A stretch of 63,969 bases of DNA, counting the filler, from Octopus bimaculoides (Eukaryota): NCBI RefSeq assembly GCF_001194135.2. It is 9 parts of 9 records of this genome, joined end to end, with 100 filler letters (N's around TTAATTAATTAA, not from the genome) between each part and the next. Parts side by side here need not be neighbours in the genome. Positions count along the whole stretch, not along the records: positions 33,503 to 40,610 come from NW_026425481.1; 8 more parts are not named here. One strand, 5' to 3'. The position numbers were made by a program, and so were the translations under genes. The notes below the pieces were generated by a model. The model saw only the letters and a program-made list of their open reading frames with translations. It did not search any database and was not told where the DNA came from. Positions 33,502 through 40,710 of the stretch are shown in pieces (the stretch's first letter is position 1; each line of letters starts with the position of its first letter).

Positions 33502-33566
33502 NATAATAATAATAATGATAATAATAATAGTAATAATAATAATGATAATAATAATAACAATAATGA

Positions 33567-33665
<99 letters not shown>

Positions 33666-33725
33666 TAATACTACTACTATTAATAATAATAATAATAGTA
33701 ATAATAATAATAATAATATTAATAA
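33502..33725. repeat. (TAA)n microsatellite
   Basis: Direct reading. Other tracts at 2176-2238 and 11966-12086, and a compound TAA/TGA/TTA/TAG tract at about 40075-40245. Confidence 0.98.
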
Positions 33726-34644
33726 TTGGCAAAATTAAAGTAAGTAAAGAAAAACAACCAAAAAAAAAGCCAACAATAACAAACATTTTGGTCCCCAATT
33801 TGGTATAAACTAGAAACGTATTCATTTATTTCTGTTCTTTTTCTTCTTTTCTTTTTTTTCCGTTTTGTAAAATGAAATGGTCCATATTTAATATACAAGG
33901 TCGGCAAAAAAACCCTCCCTTATTTTACACGGTCGTAGATGTGATACTAGAAAAAGTTAGACAAGTAGGAATGGTACCTTTGTGAAGCTTAATGCCTTAA
34001 CGTTTTTATTGCGTTAAAACTGGTGCATTCTACGCTTTGGTTGTTGACATTTATCGACCTGCAACATGTAGGAGGATTTTTTGCCGCTCTTTTCATGAAG
34101 AACAGCCATCGATATTATTATTTTTTTAATCATATTTTAATTAATTTTTAAAATTTTCTTGGTTGGGGAGATAAGTATTGAACTGTCAGTTAGAATTTTT
34201 TTTTTCTGTTCCTTTGTAGTTTTTTTTTTTTTTTTAAATCATTATTTTTCTTCTAAGAATTTTAATTCTTGGAATTATTGTTCATATATTTCTTTCCAGT
34301 TTTGACCAGATTTGATAAAAAAAAAAAAAAAAAATCCAACTGACGTAATTTCAGTGAAGAGGGGGAAAGAAATCAGCGGGGGGAGGGGGACAGAGAGAAA
34401 AATGGGAGCACAGTAAGATTTAAACGGAACTTAAATCTAAAATAATAATAATAATAACAATAATAATGCAGTAGAGGGTATTTATATATATACGCATATA
34501 TATTTAAAATAATGCAGTAGAGGGTGTATATTTTAAAATAAGCAGTTCATTTGTTTCGGTGGCAGTCACGGGGCTCGAACTCGAAGACTACCATGGAAAA
34601 TATTAAACTGAAGCTACGTTGTGTGTTATTGTGTGTGTGCGCGC

Positions 34645-34694
<50 letters not shown>

Positions 34695-35062
34695 AAACAA
34701 CATACACCTAGTAAATATATATGTAAATTGCATAATCTATGTGTGNNNNNNNNNNNNNNNNNNNNNNNNNNNNNNNNNNNNNNNNNNNNNNNNNNNNNNN
34801 NNNNNNNNNNNNNNNNNNNNNNNNNNNNNNNNNNNNNNNNNNNNNNNNNNNNNNNNNNNNNNNNNNNNNNNNNNNNNNNNNNNNNNNNNNNNNNNNNNNN
34901 NNNNNNNNNNNNNNNNNNNNNNNNNNNNNNNNNNNNNNNNNNNNNNNNNNNNNNNNNNNNNNNNNNNNNNNNNNNNNNNNNNNNNNNNNNNNNNNNNNNN
35001 NNNNNNNNNNNNNNNNNTATCTCTTAAAAACAAATTGGAAAAAAAAAAGACAAAAAAGTGGG

Positions 35063-35094
<32 letters not shown>

Positions 35095-35503
35095 CCCCTC
35101 GAAACCGAGGTGAGATTTAAAGAAAAAAAAAACTAGTAGAAATAAAAATTGCAAACACAAGAGAAAAATAATAAAAAATTTGAAATAAAATTATTGGTTA
35201 ATTGGTGGGTGACGTCTTCGACACACGTGTTCTGTAGCAGAGATCAGCTCCAGGGAGTCAGTTGATAAATTCCATATCCCATACACTTGGACCGTGTATC
35301 TCTTGGTTATTGTATATCAGTGTTATATCATTATCACGCACACACGCGTATATATTTATGCATATACACACGCAATATTTACATATGATATATACACATA
35401 CTCTATATGTATACATACGTATATCGTACTGTTAACTGTACGCTTATTGGTACATATATACGTACACTCATACGCGCACACACACATATATATATGTAAT
35501 GTT

Positions 35504-35581
<78 letters not shown>

Positions 35582-38500
35582 TGTATATATGTGCAGTTGT
35601 ATATATGAACATTTGTAAATTCATGTGTTGTATGACTGTAAAATAAGCTGGCCTCCATGTTGCTCTCGTAGTGTGCCATGAAATCACGTGACAAATTTGG
35701 GGCGGGTTTCCTCACAGAGGTTTGTTCATTCAATTTGATTTTTAAAAAATAATAATAATAACAAAACAAGACTCATATCCATGATTTGGTCAGGGAAGAT
35801 TGAATTGAAAAAAGGATAATATATATATATATCTATACATACATACATATATGTGTGTGTGTGTGTGTATATACATGTATATATATATTTTTATATATGT
35901 ATAGAGTCATACATATATATGCAGGTATGTATGTATATATGTATATGGGGATATCACACGGGTATCATTAAATGCCGTTTATTATCATTGTCGCCGGATA
36001 GCAATTGTCTGATACTTTTTTCATTTGCATATTGTTTGTCTGCATTTGTATATGTACGTGTATATGCGCATGTGTGTCTGTGTGTGTGAGTGTGTGTGTA
36101 TTATGTTTGTATGAGTGTGTTATTGTATGAAAAAAGACAAATGGTGACCATCGGGATCCCTAAGGTATTCGATTTCAAAGATTAAAAAGTTGAATTAGCG
36201 ATAAGAAGAAAGTTTATTGTCATTTTTATGTTTCTATTGTTGACGTCTTAATTTCTGCTTTACATATTTATCTTTCTAGTCTAGAACTTCCCAAATTTCG
36301 ACGTTAGACTCCCTGAAGTTCATGCTCTAAGCCCCAAGCTTTGTAACCAAGCTCCCCTTTCTAATTTAGGCCCAATCCCTGTTTTTCTCATTTGAACCTT
36401 TTACTTTTCTAATGCTGACTTCCCTAGCTGTTTCATCTCGTCCTATAATTCTTTCTATGTGTTTATCAACAAAACCCCAAACTCTCTCTTAGTTCCTCCT
36501 TATTTTGTCCCTAGCTCTCTAATTTGCCTTACACTCTTTTCGAATCCTGATCAGCCCCTAACTTTTTAACATGGACCTCCCTAATTCTTTATTTCAAACT
36601 CCTAATGATTCAAATCCAAACTTCACAAATCTTCTAATTTAGACACGTATAATCCCTGAGACCCCTAACCCTTAGAATCTCGGATATCCTATAACCTTGC
36701 TAATCTTCTAGTCTACATCTTTTTCTAATCTGTAGTCCCTATTTCTAATTGAAATCTGAAATCGTTGTGAAGAAAACTAATTTTGTTTCACCTGAATGGT
36801 TTCGTTTGTTCTTTGGTTTATTAAACATTCCTATAGGCTAATATGGTATGGTGCCTCATTTTAGACGTCTCTGAGTATTCTGCTAGATATGACTGCTTGA
36901 AAAAGACAAGCACCAAAGTGCAAATAGGATATTTGAGAGAGAGCTGAAACGTGCAAATAGGATATTAAAGAGAGAGCTAGAACGACGCAAGCTGTCTTTT
37001 TTTTTTTAGAGACCTATCTAAGGTTCTTAAGATCGAGTTTGGAACAGTACAATTACTGCTGGCACTGTACCACAGAAATATAGGCTCTTTGTGTTCAGAG
37101 TCAAGGACATCGAATACAAAAGTGGTTAATATTATCAAATGGTATTAGTAATAAAAACCTAATATTACTAAATACTAAAGATCAATAAAATAAAACTACT
37201 AAAATAAACGGGATGAAAGAAAATAATTAATTTACGAGGGCTAAAGGAAGAGGAGGAGAATAAGGTGAAAGTCAGAAAGATGGGAAATTGGGAGGATGAA
37301 AGAGAGACAGAAAGTTAATTCACAGAATAATGTCGTTGTGGGATGTATGTGTTTATTAATGTTTTGATTGATGGTCTTTATGGAAAAGGCACTAAATTTG
37401 AAAGTATTCACATGAATTAAAAAAAAAAACTGAGATGAATTTATGCATGTATATATGCATGTATGNNNNNNNNNNNNNNNNNNNNNNNNNNNNNNNNNNN
37501 NNNNNNNNNNNNNNNNNNNNNNNNNNNNNNNNNNNNNNNNNNNNNNNNNNNNNNNNNNNNNNNNNNNNNNNNNNNNNNNNNNNNNNNNNNNNNNNNNNNN
37601 NNNNNNNNNNNNNNNNNNNNNNNNNNNNNNNNNNNNNNNNNNNNNNNNNNNNNATATATACACACAGGAGTTAGCATTATCATTATGAGTATTTTCATAT
37701 TCCTAAAATAGTCGTATTACCTTATGGAGTACTTTTGTCAGATATATTGTTGTGAGCAAGTAAAAACAAAATGGCTTCTGACGTTTCGTGTAAACCGCAT
37801 TCATTTTGAAATGATGGCTGAATTTGATACAAATGAGACCCTGCTAAACAACCCCCCTTTAATTTTGGGATTTGGTAATTGCGTGTCAATAGGATAATCC
37901 AGAATTTGTTGTTTTACAATAGATTGTGTTCGTAGTCAGAGTTTATCCTTCAAATAGTTTCGTTATTGAGTATTACGTTTTGTGTGCGTGTTTTTACCAA
38001 AGTTCATTATTCATTTTGTTTCAAAATGCAGTATAAAGTTTCGTATAAAAAATGTTTGAAACACGCATACGCTAACACACACACGGTCACGCGCAGACAC
38101 TCGGGGGAAAAAAGTCTAAATGGTTATTATATATTACTCTATAGAAACTTTCGATATAAAGTAGCATATAATACAGTCACATGACTAGACACGTGATTAA
38201 CCCAATCGACAATTACCTATGTTTAAAAGTTATGGCTGTCGTAGCAGTGAAAATAACGTTTGGATGGTCAAATAAAATTCTTTGAATGAAAATGGAATAA
38301 CACTCGAAACATAAGGATTGTGGTTCAAATTCTATGAATGGGTGTGATGATTGTAAGTGTGCATGTATATATATATATATATATATATCTGTGTATTTAT
38401 ATTCATGTGTGTTTGTGGGTAATGTATGTATTAATGCGCGATTTCACAACAGGGATGAAGTAAAAAAAAAGACCCTTATAAAGTAGGGAATGGTTTGGTA

Positions 38501-38707
38501 TATATGTCTTGTAGAAAAATTCTTATCATACAGAAAACATTCCCTCTTCTTTTTTTATTTATCCATTTTGTTCGTCTATTTTTTTGTATTTTTATCAAAG
38601 TCCCTTTCGTCCTCCTGTTCAAGGATTTGTTCGTTTGGGTTCTCCTCTTGGAGAACAATGCCAATCTCTGGCACATCAAGAATCCTGACCAAATCACGAA
38701 TTATGAG

Positions 38708-39116
38708 TCAAACCTCTTGATAATGAGGATTGTGTGTCGACGGCCCAGCAGTCGTGTAAATGTCGTTTGGAAGAGAATGGCGGCGCTTCTGATCGTTGGC
38801 GGCGCCGTTCGCCATACCGCTGATTCCTGGGTTGTTGTTGTTGTTTACGTAAATGTTCTGAGGCACCAGTTTTACCATTAAATCTTCCTTCTCTGGAAAG
38901 CGCACGATTTTGTTGTCTATCTCTTCGTAGATGACCTCATTGTCGCTGCTGTAGGCATGTTCGGTGTCGTCACTGAAATGATGTCCAATGTGACTGCTGC
39001 CACACATCGGGAACGATGTGCTTCCGTTGCGCATGCTCTCACAACGTAGTTTGTTGAACACAACTGATTTTTCGGTGACTCGAGGTATACCAGGACGATT
39101 GCTCTTTCGAGAACGC
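38708..39116 (-). CDS. Coding exon (probably terminal) resembling the cytoplasmic tail of a single-pass receptor or adaptor, rich in Tyr motifs
   Basis: Strong acceptor (cacattttcttttcccgtttacag|) at 39117-39118. The frame is open from the first full codon to TGA at 38710-38708: RSRKSNRPGIPRVTEKSVVFNKLRCESMRNG...NEVIYEEIDNK...QNIYVNNNNN...RRHSLPNDIYTT...NPHYQEV. Coding-like GC content against AT-rich flanks. Confidence 0.7.
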
Positions 39117-39194
39117 CTGTAAACGGGAAAAGAAAATGTGGTGTTAGTATTTTCTTAAAATATATAATCTATTTCTTAAAATATATAATCTATA

Positions 39195-39357
39195 GGCGTA
39201 GGAGTGGCTGTGTGGTAAGTAGCTTGCTTACCAACCACATGGTTCCGGGTTCAGTCCCACTGCGTGGCACCTTGGGAAGGTGTCTTCTACTATAGCCTCG
39301 AGCCGACCAAAGCCTTGTGAGTGGATTTGGTAGACGGAAACTGAAAGAAGCCCGTCG

Positions 39358-39418
<61 letters not shown>

Positions 39419-39485
39419 TTGTGTGTCTGTGTTTGCCCCCAACATCGCTTGACAACCGATGCTGGTGTGTTTACGTCCCCGTAAA
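39195..39485 (+). mobile_element. SINE family A copy, young, in the intron upstream of the 39116 exon
   Basis: Near-consensus head and middle with CpGs intact. Confidence 0.9.
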
Positions 39486-40107
39486 CTGAGCTGGGGTAGT
39501 GGGCTGGCTGATAACATCGACCCTAGTACTCGACTGGTACTTATTTTATCGACCCCGAAAGGGTTGCCGACAAAGTGGGAAAAACGTTAAGGAGCCGGAA
39601 AAAATGCCACTAAGCGTTATTAGGATTCTGCCACCTCGCCATTATAACAATAAAGAAATTATAAATACATCTGTTTTTTGCTATAATTCCTTGAAAAAAC
39701 TTAAGTCAAAAGCTTATTTCCTACACTCCCCACCAGCTTTTATTTTTTTGATAACATTTACTTCCGGTCATTTGATAAGCATGGCAGAAATGGTTGACTA
39801 AGCTAAACTCGTGACAAAGAACTATATAACCTACCTTCGTCGTATTGCCAGGAATCCTATTATACAGATTGACATTAGAATAAAAACCAGCAATCCTGTG
39901 ACAGAAGCCGCAACTATATATATATAAACATAAAAAAAAAGAATGGAAATCACCAATAAATAATTAATGAATAAATAAAAAACAAAATAAAAATAAAATT
40001 AAGATGGATATTGTCTTTTATTAAAAAATGTCAAAACTTCGAAATTTGCATTTAAAATATTTTCAAATGCCATTGTCATTATTATTGTTGTTGGTATAAT
40101 AATAATA

Positions 40108-40173
<66 letters not shown>

Positions 40174-40710
40174 ATTATTATTATTATTATTATTATTAGT
40201 AGTAGTAGTAGTAGTATTGTTATTATTATTATTATTGTTGTTATTAAGACAACTTGGTTCAGTGGGTAAAACCAAATTTTATGTGTGTTTTCTATGGCAT
40301 TTATAAAATTTTATTTTAAAGGCTGTTTGTCGAAAATACCAAATGTTACTGTAACGGGGAGGAGGGTGTGGATGCAACAATATCAACTACAACAACAACA
40401 AAAACAATAATGGAACAAACAATACAATAAGAATGTAGGCAAGAGGAAGAAGAACAACAACGGACAATAAAAAAGGACAGTACGGAAGTACAACAGACAG
40501 GAAGTACTACAACAACAACAACAGTTAAAACAACAACAAACAATAACTGGAAGCAGTAAGGACAACAAAAACATGCCGCCGCCGCCACCACCACCAACAA
40601 AACCACCACCNNNNNNNNNNNNNNNNNNNNNNNNNNNNNNNNNNNNNNNNNNNNTTAATTAATTAANNNNNNNNNNNNNNNNNNNNNNNNNNNNNNNNNN
40701 NNNNNNNNNN

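Follow-up and report, generated by a model that had tools for sequence, protein, structure and literature searches.

Conserved functional readthrough of stop codons is well documented in insects, with a handful of vertebrate cases; UGA is the leakiest of the three stops, and C at position +4 is its most permissive neighbour. Here we describe a candidate for such readthrough in a coleoid cephalopod, namely the TGA-C that closes the annotated reading frame of LOC106878046 ("uncharacterized protein") of Octopus bimaculoides, together with the 43 sense codons that follow it in the same frame. The gene lies on the minus strand of the window, a stretch of 63,969 nucleotides (filler included) drawn from assembly GCF_001194135.2, and the part analysed, window positions 33,503-40,610, comes from record NW_026425481.1.

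The closest described systems are the conserved stop-codon readthrough genes of insects, such as kelch and headcase, which were recognised by ribosome profiling and by coding signatures in cross-species comparison (Dunn et al. 2013, PMC3840789). As in those genes, in which UGA-C is enriched, the stop of the octopus gene is retained across species, and the downstream open reading frame (ORF) of tens of codons shows protein-like substitutions and would give rise to a C-terminally extended isoform. In contrast to the insect set, this is a single gene in the Mollusca (Coleoidea), known from sequence comparison, and no conserved 3' stem-loop was detected. A second group is formed by the vertebrate UGA_CUAG readthrough genes AQP4, OPRK1, OPRL1, MAPK10, MDH1, LDHB and VDR (PMC5868278). 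With these the octopus gene shares a deeply conserved UGA with C at +4 and a short extension that would change the C-terminus, as in MDH1 and LDHB, which gain a targeting signal; however, its post-stop bases are CUCAUA and not CUAG, UGA CUCA being present in all seven taxa compared. The third system is the adenosine-to-inosine (A-to-I) recoding of mRNA in coleoids, reportedly treated also by Liscovitch-Brauer in 2017. This recoding (Alon 2015, PMC4384741) operates in the same animals, likewise diversifies proteins post-transcriptionally, and shares with the present site a flanking sequence that is conserved between octopus and cuttlefish. It differs in that no A>G change was seen at the stop, the 5' neighbour of the A is unfavourable, and the constraint is phased by codon rather than by structure. 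Judged by sequence comparison, the locus thus displays the features by which readthrough has been recognised in insects and mammals, that is, a retained stop, an open frame, protein-like substitutions and a UGA-C context. Full-text literature searches returned no paper that describes readthrough of a stop codon in a cephalopod; cephalopods appeared there only as an example of abundant editing.

The initial annotation had described, on the minus strand, a TGA at 38710-38708 followed by 43 open codons up to a TAG at 38578-38576, and this description proved exact. The stop region consists of the following features.

Positions 38700-38710, minus strand: the annotated stop TGA (38710-38708) flanked on the 3' side by CTCATAAT; all 7 taxa share the 11 nt TGACTCATAAT without change, and the +4 base is C.
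Positions 38675-38707, minus strand: the proximal extension, codons 1-11, LIIRDLVRILD; predicted to form an amphipathic helix, with the same protein sequence in octopus and cuttlefish.
Positions 38579-38674, minus strand: the distal extension, codons 12-43, VPEIGIVLQEENPNEQILEQEDERDFDKNTKK; an acidic, polar and quickly evolving tail.
Positions 38576-38578, minus strand: the second stop, TAG, which terminates the extension and is soon followed by more in-frame stops.

The 43 sense codons (38707-38579) translate to LIIRDLVRILDVPEIGIVLQEENPNEQILEQEDERDFDKNTKK. Peptides encoded by the extension include DLVR and ILDVPEIGIVLQEENPNEQILEQEDER, and a peptide spanning the stop would read ...THNPHYQEV-X-LIIR.

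The locus was compared over seven taxa, each represented by mRNA or by locus DNA: O. bimaculoides, a sister octopus, three cuttlefish and two further decapod-like taxa. The sister octopus (L001) is close to O. bimaculoides, with a synonymous divergence (dS) of ~0.19; one decapod-like taxon is represented by genomic contigs (L002 and L003) and the other by transcripts (L004-L009). Among the cuttlefish, the tail encoded by L010 matches protein CAE1262619.1 of Sepia (Acanthosepion) pharaonis exactly, and the runs behind L011-L020 are given as Sepia esculenta larvae (PMC10466719, PMC11917092). The third cuttlefish-like sequence, L021, derives from run SRR1386223, which was used as Sepia esculenta in PMC6906322. 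It lies at a dS of ~0.2 from the larval S. esculenta sequences L011-L020 and differs from them in the length of the extension, and the run may be mislabelled or represent a distinct lineage. The L021 contig was also seen to terminate in Illumina adapter sequence. Nonsynonymous divergence (dN) was 0.05-0.07 among L002, L004 and the cuttlefish, which form one group, and ~0.22 between these and the octopus pair, while synonymous sites between the octopus and decapod lineages were saturated (dS > 1 or not computable). This grouping by distance indicates that the comparison spans the octopus-decapod split. The octopus and cuttlefish lineages have been apart for a time of the order of 250-300 million years. 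Neither a word-index search nor an exhaustive HMMER search recovered any lineage beyond these coleoid sequences.

In all seven taxa, from octopus to cuttlefish, the TGA was kept as a stop and followed by CTCATAAT, with TGA and the next 8 nt, the C at +4 included, invariant. The first two codons after the stop, CTC (Leu) and ATA (Ile), never varied, although synonymous sites elsewhere were saturated (dS > 1). Frame 0 beyond the stop was open for 43, 45, 80, 76, 67, 67 and 63 codons in the seven taxa, with 0 stops, while over the same span the other two sense frames carried 1-21 stops and every antisense frame had stops in at least some taxa. The initial annotation had cautioned that an open run of this length can arise by chance. 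This caution holds for the O. bimaculoides genome taken singly, for which a first-order Markov simulation trained on local sequence gave a probability of 0.05-0.10 for 43 open codons, but it does not hold across species. For the four deeply diverged lineages the chance of an open frame was 0.05, 0.002, 0.019 and 0.02 respectively, and because synonymous sites are saturated these lineages can be regarded as approximately independent trials. An open frame across all four, taken together with substitutions of a protein-like kind, thus lies far beyond chance.

The pattern of these substitutions was most clear-cut immediately after the stop. Codons 1-11 encoded LIIRDLVRILD in all taxa despite at least 8 nucleotide substitutions, every one of which (8/8+) was synonymous: ATT, ATA and ATC were used for Ile, CGT, CGG and AGG for Arg, CTT, CTG, TTG and TTA for Leu, and GAT and GAC for Asp, including first-position changes in Arg and Leu codons. 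With an expected synonymous-site fraction of 0.24, the probability of an all-synonymous outcome is ~1e-5, and every pairwise comparison gave dN = 0 with 2-6 synonymous differences. The last nine codons before the stop, THNPHYQEV, showed the same synonymous-only behaviour, and since the two segments are alike in constraint, the best-conserved block of the tail crosses the stop codon. Past codon 14 the extension evolves rapidly and is of low complexity. The orthologue alignment proposed in the initial annotation as a check bore out its claim, with the frame kept, substitutions biased to synonymous sites, and dN/dS of 0 in the proximal and 0.09-0.45 (close pairs) in the distal extension, as against 0.03-0.12 in the coding tail. 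Frame-breaking insertions, deletions or stops in the relatives were looked for in the same manner. Internal insertions and deletions (indels) of the extension, scored in a codon-blind alignment, measured 18, 12, 3 and 9 nt, all multiples of 3, and 1-nt indels were confined to the last few codons at the extreme 3' end, where they move the second stop, so that its position differs by a few codons from one close relative to another. A plus-strand ORF at 38490-38720, which shares the wobble positions of the extension, was considered as the source of the constraint and rejected, as that frame has stops in cuttlefish. On this comparative evidence we are highly confident that the codons behind the TGA are translated, and purifying selection acts on them at the protein level in octopus as well as in cuttlefish. 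The suggestion that the YQEV end gives way to a different, longer tail is strongly supported by the cross-species evidence, which shows the stretch after TGA-C to be coding.

The composition of the extension was also as first described. It is richer in G+C (0.40) than the untranslated region (UTR) downstream (0.29 in the next 300 nt), the coding tail having 0.48, and it reads like protein, with an amphipathic start followed by an acidic tail: LIIRDLVRILD has a helical hydrophobic moment of 0.81, and the net charge of the whole extension was -6 to -14 in every taxon. AlphaFold2 predicted the tail to be disordered, with a mean predicted local distance difference test (pLDDT) score of 41. The only part with a pLDDT of at least 50 was one low-confidence helix running from PHYQEV through ...VRIL, a prediction that hints weakly at a helix across the stop region.

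At the level of RNA, the stop was retained. In three raw RNA runs, with ~33 reads in total at the stop, no A>G change was observed at 38708 or anywhere in 38415-39130; a variant was recorded only when carried by at least 3 reads in one run, and editing up to ~15% would therefore have escaped. The same runs gave no variant at the stop and no splice junction in 38415-39130, including none that leaves 38714, and coverage was continuous over the stop. The O. bimaculoides RNA assemblies, which discard minor variants, each yielded one contig that was colinear with the genome (17/17) and showed 0 differences from it, at k-mer depths up to ~1480. Spliced full-length Sepia mRNAs also contained the TGA and the extension, and all cuttlefish contigs read TGA at the stop. 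RNA runs from other species (X19-X21) placed on the window at 80% likeness gave spurious A-rich matches only and were set aside.

Three routes past the stop had been put forward, namely readthrough, editing of the UGA and a hidden splice donor. Only readthrough fits all of the evidence; editing found no support in A>G reads or in the 17 assemblies, all of which carry TGA, and the donor found none in junctions. Programmed ribosomal readthrough at UGA-C probably yields the longer tail part of the time, a reading that we favour because TGA-C is invariant in 7/7 taxa, constraint begins with the first post-stop codon, and the mRNA follows the genome colinearly. We infer that ribosomal readthrough, rather than a rare change in the RNA, is the route past the stop. 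Most ribosomes would terminate at the UGA after ...NPHYQEV, while a fraction would decode it, in its leaky UGA-C context, via a near-cognate tRNA and continue in frame for 43 codons in O. bimaculoides and 45-80 in the other taxa. In the second isoform thus produced, the free C-terminus would be replaced by the amphipathic helix LIIRDLVRILD directly after the NPxY motif and then by an acidic, disordered tail. By analogy with isoforms to which readthrough adds a signal, it is plausible that the extension alters adaptor binding or sorting of the tail.

Several points weigh against readthrough. The support for translation past the stop is comparative and drawn from sequence only, the phylogenetic sample is small (seven taxa, with the tail found in coleoids only), and the context UGA CUC A is unlike the experimentally validated vertebrate UGA CUAG. 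The raw depth at the stop, only ~33 reads, leaves editing up to roughly 15% invisible. Moreover, RNAalifold and comparison with shuffled sequences revealed no convincing readthrough-stimulating RNA structure downstream, the sole consensus helix being one that encloses the stop. This is an imperfect 15-bp hairpin at 38664-38721 (alignment A2, columns 20-37 with 50-66), which pairs GUUUGAC, containing the stop, with GUCAGG of codons 7-8. Across the 7 taxa 97% of cells were paired, and there was no compensatory change, although three one-sided changes all kept the pairing. Its stability relative to shuffles in four lineages gave z = -2.4 in O. bimaculoides and +0.9, -0.4 and -0.8 in the others, and was significant in O. 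bimaculoides only. The hairpin was thus rejected as a readthrough-stimulating structure, since it encloses the stop itself, is without covariation and is unstable in most lineages.

The alternative that survives best, although we consider it unlikely, is A-to-I editing, by which some transcripts, perhaps in certain tissues only, would carry UGI, decoded like UGG (Trp), in place of UGA, the extension being made from the edited mRNA. Coleoids recode extensively by ADAR (PMC5868278), the stop sits inside the hairpin just described with its pairing preserved, and editing at or below ~15% falls beneath detection at the read depth available. However, no A>G was recorded in the three raw runs, the 17 assemblies and all cuttlefish contigs read TGA, and the hairpin lacks compensatory changes and in 3/4 lineages is no more stable than shuffled sequences. 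In addition, the A to be edited is preceded by G, the 5' neighbour most disfavoured by ADAR, and UAG, which is a better ADAR target than UGA, was never used at the stop in the seven taxa, all of which keep UGA. Database proteins P0003-P0005 and P0011-P0015 do show Trp at this place (...YQEVWLIIRD), but this was rejected as a sign of editing, as it does not come from a G in the DNA, which reads TGA throughout. In the same proteins (loci L001-L009) W stands for a second TGA as well, since the gene caller translated the AT-rich contigs with genetic code 4. Such code-4 Trp residues in public protein predictions resemble recoding, and a search for stop-loss editing could be misled by them.

A little less likely still is that editing acts here as a conserved and regulated switch, in which ADAR would edit the hairpin UGA to UGG in some tissues (e.g. 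neural), at an ancient site common to octopus and cuttlefish. If this were true, stop-loss editing by tissue would switch the receptor tail between a C-terminus with the NPxY exposed and one extended by the helix and the acidic segment.

We regard it as improbable that the conservation reflects a non-coding element of the 3' UTR, with the distal frame open by chance or through (AAT) repeat expansion. The 14 nt GATTTGGTCAGGAT are indeed invariant at the nucleotide level, the O. bimaculoides open run alone does not reach significance (P = 0.05-0.10), and the L002 extension includes an (AAT)n-like portion, a kind of sequence that keeps its frame automatically. Such an element is, however, at odds with variation in codons 1-11 at synonymous sites only, which in Arg and Leu codons extends to joint changes at the first and third positions, and with the openness of all four saturated lineages, a distal dN/dS < 0.5 and indels in multiples of 3; antisense frames, moreover, carry stops in cuttlefish.

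The two remaining alternatives are both highly improbable. Selenocysteine insertion at the UGA, directed by a selenocysteine insertion sequence (SECIS) in the 3' UTR, would agree with a strictly conserved in-frame TGA flanked by conserved coding sequence, which is the usual signature of a selenoprotein, but no SECIS family match was found at E <= 5 in 3 kb downstream (window 35700-39200), in 5.4 kb of L002, or in L001, L004 and L010, the residue lies in the cytoplasmic tail of a receptor with no Cys or redox motif near the site, and an exhaustive HMMER search of 1.8 billion representatives gave no homologue with Cys at that position. The Rfam hits in the SECIS scan were all microsatellite look-alikes of microRNA families. 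A 5' splice site at GT 38713-38712, which the initial annotation had offered as a phase-0 donor (AG/GTTTGA, the slash marking the junction), or another splice that removes the TGA, has in its favour the minimal AG/GT of O. bimaculoides GAG/GTTTGA, but no junction leaves 38714, depth is continuous over the stop and the 17 assemblies are colinear; the AG is AA in all five decapod-like taxa, which read GAA/GTT or GAA/GTC and then TGA, a poor donor kept only as Glu-Val codons; the base at +3 is a pyrimidine; codons 1-11 would become intronic, which contradicts their synonymous-only evolution; and acceptors just upstream of the TGA, as read from the sequence, would put the TGA or nearby stops in frame.

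The gene was identified by a protein search, in which the translated tail gave a 100% match to P0001, the product of LOC106878046. Within the part analysed it is represented by its transmembrane exon and tail exon only, the lectin exons lying outside, as judged by tblastn of the Sepia orthologue P0006. The remaining features are as follows.

Positions 39835-39913, minus strand: the penultimate coding exon, encoding the transmembrane helix (..AASVTGLLVFILMSICIIGFLAIRRR); the donor GT, read like the exon from the sequence, lies at 39834-39833.
Positions 38711-39116, minus strand: the last coding exon, encoding by translation the cytoplasmic tail RSRKSNRPG...YEEI...YVNN...NPHYQEV of a type-I C-type-lectin receptor.
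Positions 38554-38559, minus strand: an AATAAA hexamer, a candidate proximal poly(A) signal by its sequence.

For the 5' boundary of the penultimate exon we infer from the sequence an acceptor AG at 39915-39914; P0006 gave a tblastn match over 39917-39834, and the 3' end of the exon is confirmed by RNA reads and contigs whose loose ends at 39118 read ...GGATTCCTGGCAATACGACGA. The last exon, which reads RSRKSNRPG...EVIYEEIDNKIV...NIYVNN...THNPHYQEV and then TGA, starts at 39116 behind a polypyrimidine tract and an acceptor AG at 39118-39117, and RNA depth is 0 upstream of 39123. RNA reads and contigs that reach 39118 join the exon ending at 39835; the exon boundary is therefore real and the frame is the genuine coding frame. 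The tail encoded by the last exon is 68% identical to residues 293-431 of Sepia esculenta P0006.

The full-length orthologues P0006 and P0007 (430-431 residues) begin with a signal peptide, followed by a single C-type lectin domain (PF00059, E = 1.4e-14 in P0006), a Ser/Thr-rich stalk, a transmembrane helix and the tail, and their lectin domain is nearest to the C-type lectin-like domains (CTLDs) of PLA2R, DEC-205 and mannose receptors. Invariant tyrosine motifs in the tail (38711-39116) are EVIYEEID, NIYVNN, N[DE]IY[AT][ST] and NPHY, of which we take YEEI, YVNN and NPHY to be classical Src-SH2, Grb2-SH2 and NPxY/PTB-type motifs, respectively. The sequence of the tail thus suggests a receptor that binds phosphotyrosine and PTB adaptors. 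In its architecture the protein resembles the single-CTLD type-I receptors of the mannose-receptor lineage, for which we assume CD302, layilin and chondrolectin to be the appropriate comparison set, with a single CTLD, then a stalk and a transmembrane helix, and finally a short tail that bears NPxY and tyrosine motifs. In contrast, the octopus and cuttlefish tail has no detectable relatives outside coleoids, and the likeness is one of architecture and of the CTLD. Two gene models of this family deserve comment. That of P0001 is probably faulty, as it starts at a Met within the transmembrane helix and has 149 residues against ~430 in the orthologues, and that of P0008 (S. pharaonis CAE1262619.1) also looks faulty, with a 150-residue low-complexity N-terminus rich in F, L and S and a garbled transmembrane segment (ITGRGMFLKDVTVRSRKS).

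Downstream of the second stop, RNA depth approximately halved below ~38535 and 5 molecules ended at 38533 (run X22), while contigs ran past 38415; no poly(A) loose ends were listed. If the AATAAA at 38559-38554 serves as a proximal poly(A) signal, as it may, the 3' UTR would be only ~175 nt long and consist nearly entirely of the extension ORF. Within the intron, at 39175-39400, a dispersed repeat is followed by TA/GT microsatellites, and RNA depth there was ~1000-2000x against ~15x in the adjoining exon, with many variant positions and chimeric joints. This segment looks like an abundant transcribed interspersed repeat family, and ARAGORN found no tRNA in the repeat. Elsewhere in the part analysed, positions 34740-35020, 37460-37660 and 40063-40275 hold two runs of N (assembly gaps) and long (CAT)n/(AAT)n repeats in which poly-His and poly-Asn ORFs arise as artefacts.

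Since the octopus and cuttlefish lineages parted, the stop has persisted together with the peptide that follows it, and the locus is a clean and directly testable candidate for readthrough. If confirmed, UGA CUC AUA would be a new readthrough context for study, and gene models that end at YQEV would be missing a protein isoform. Cephalopods would then be seen to use translational recoding too, besides RNA editing.

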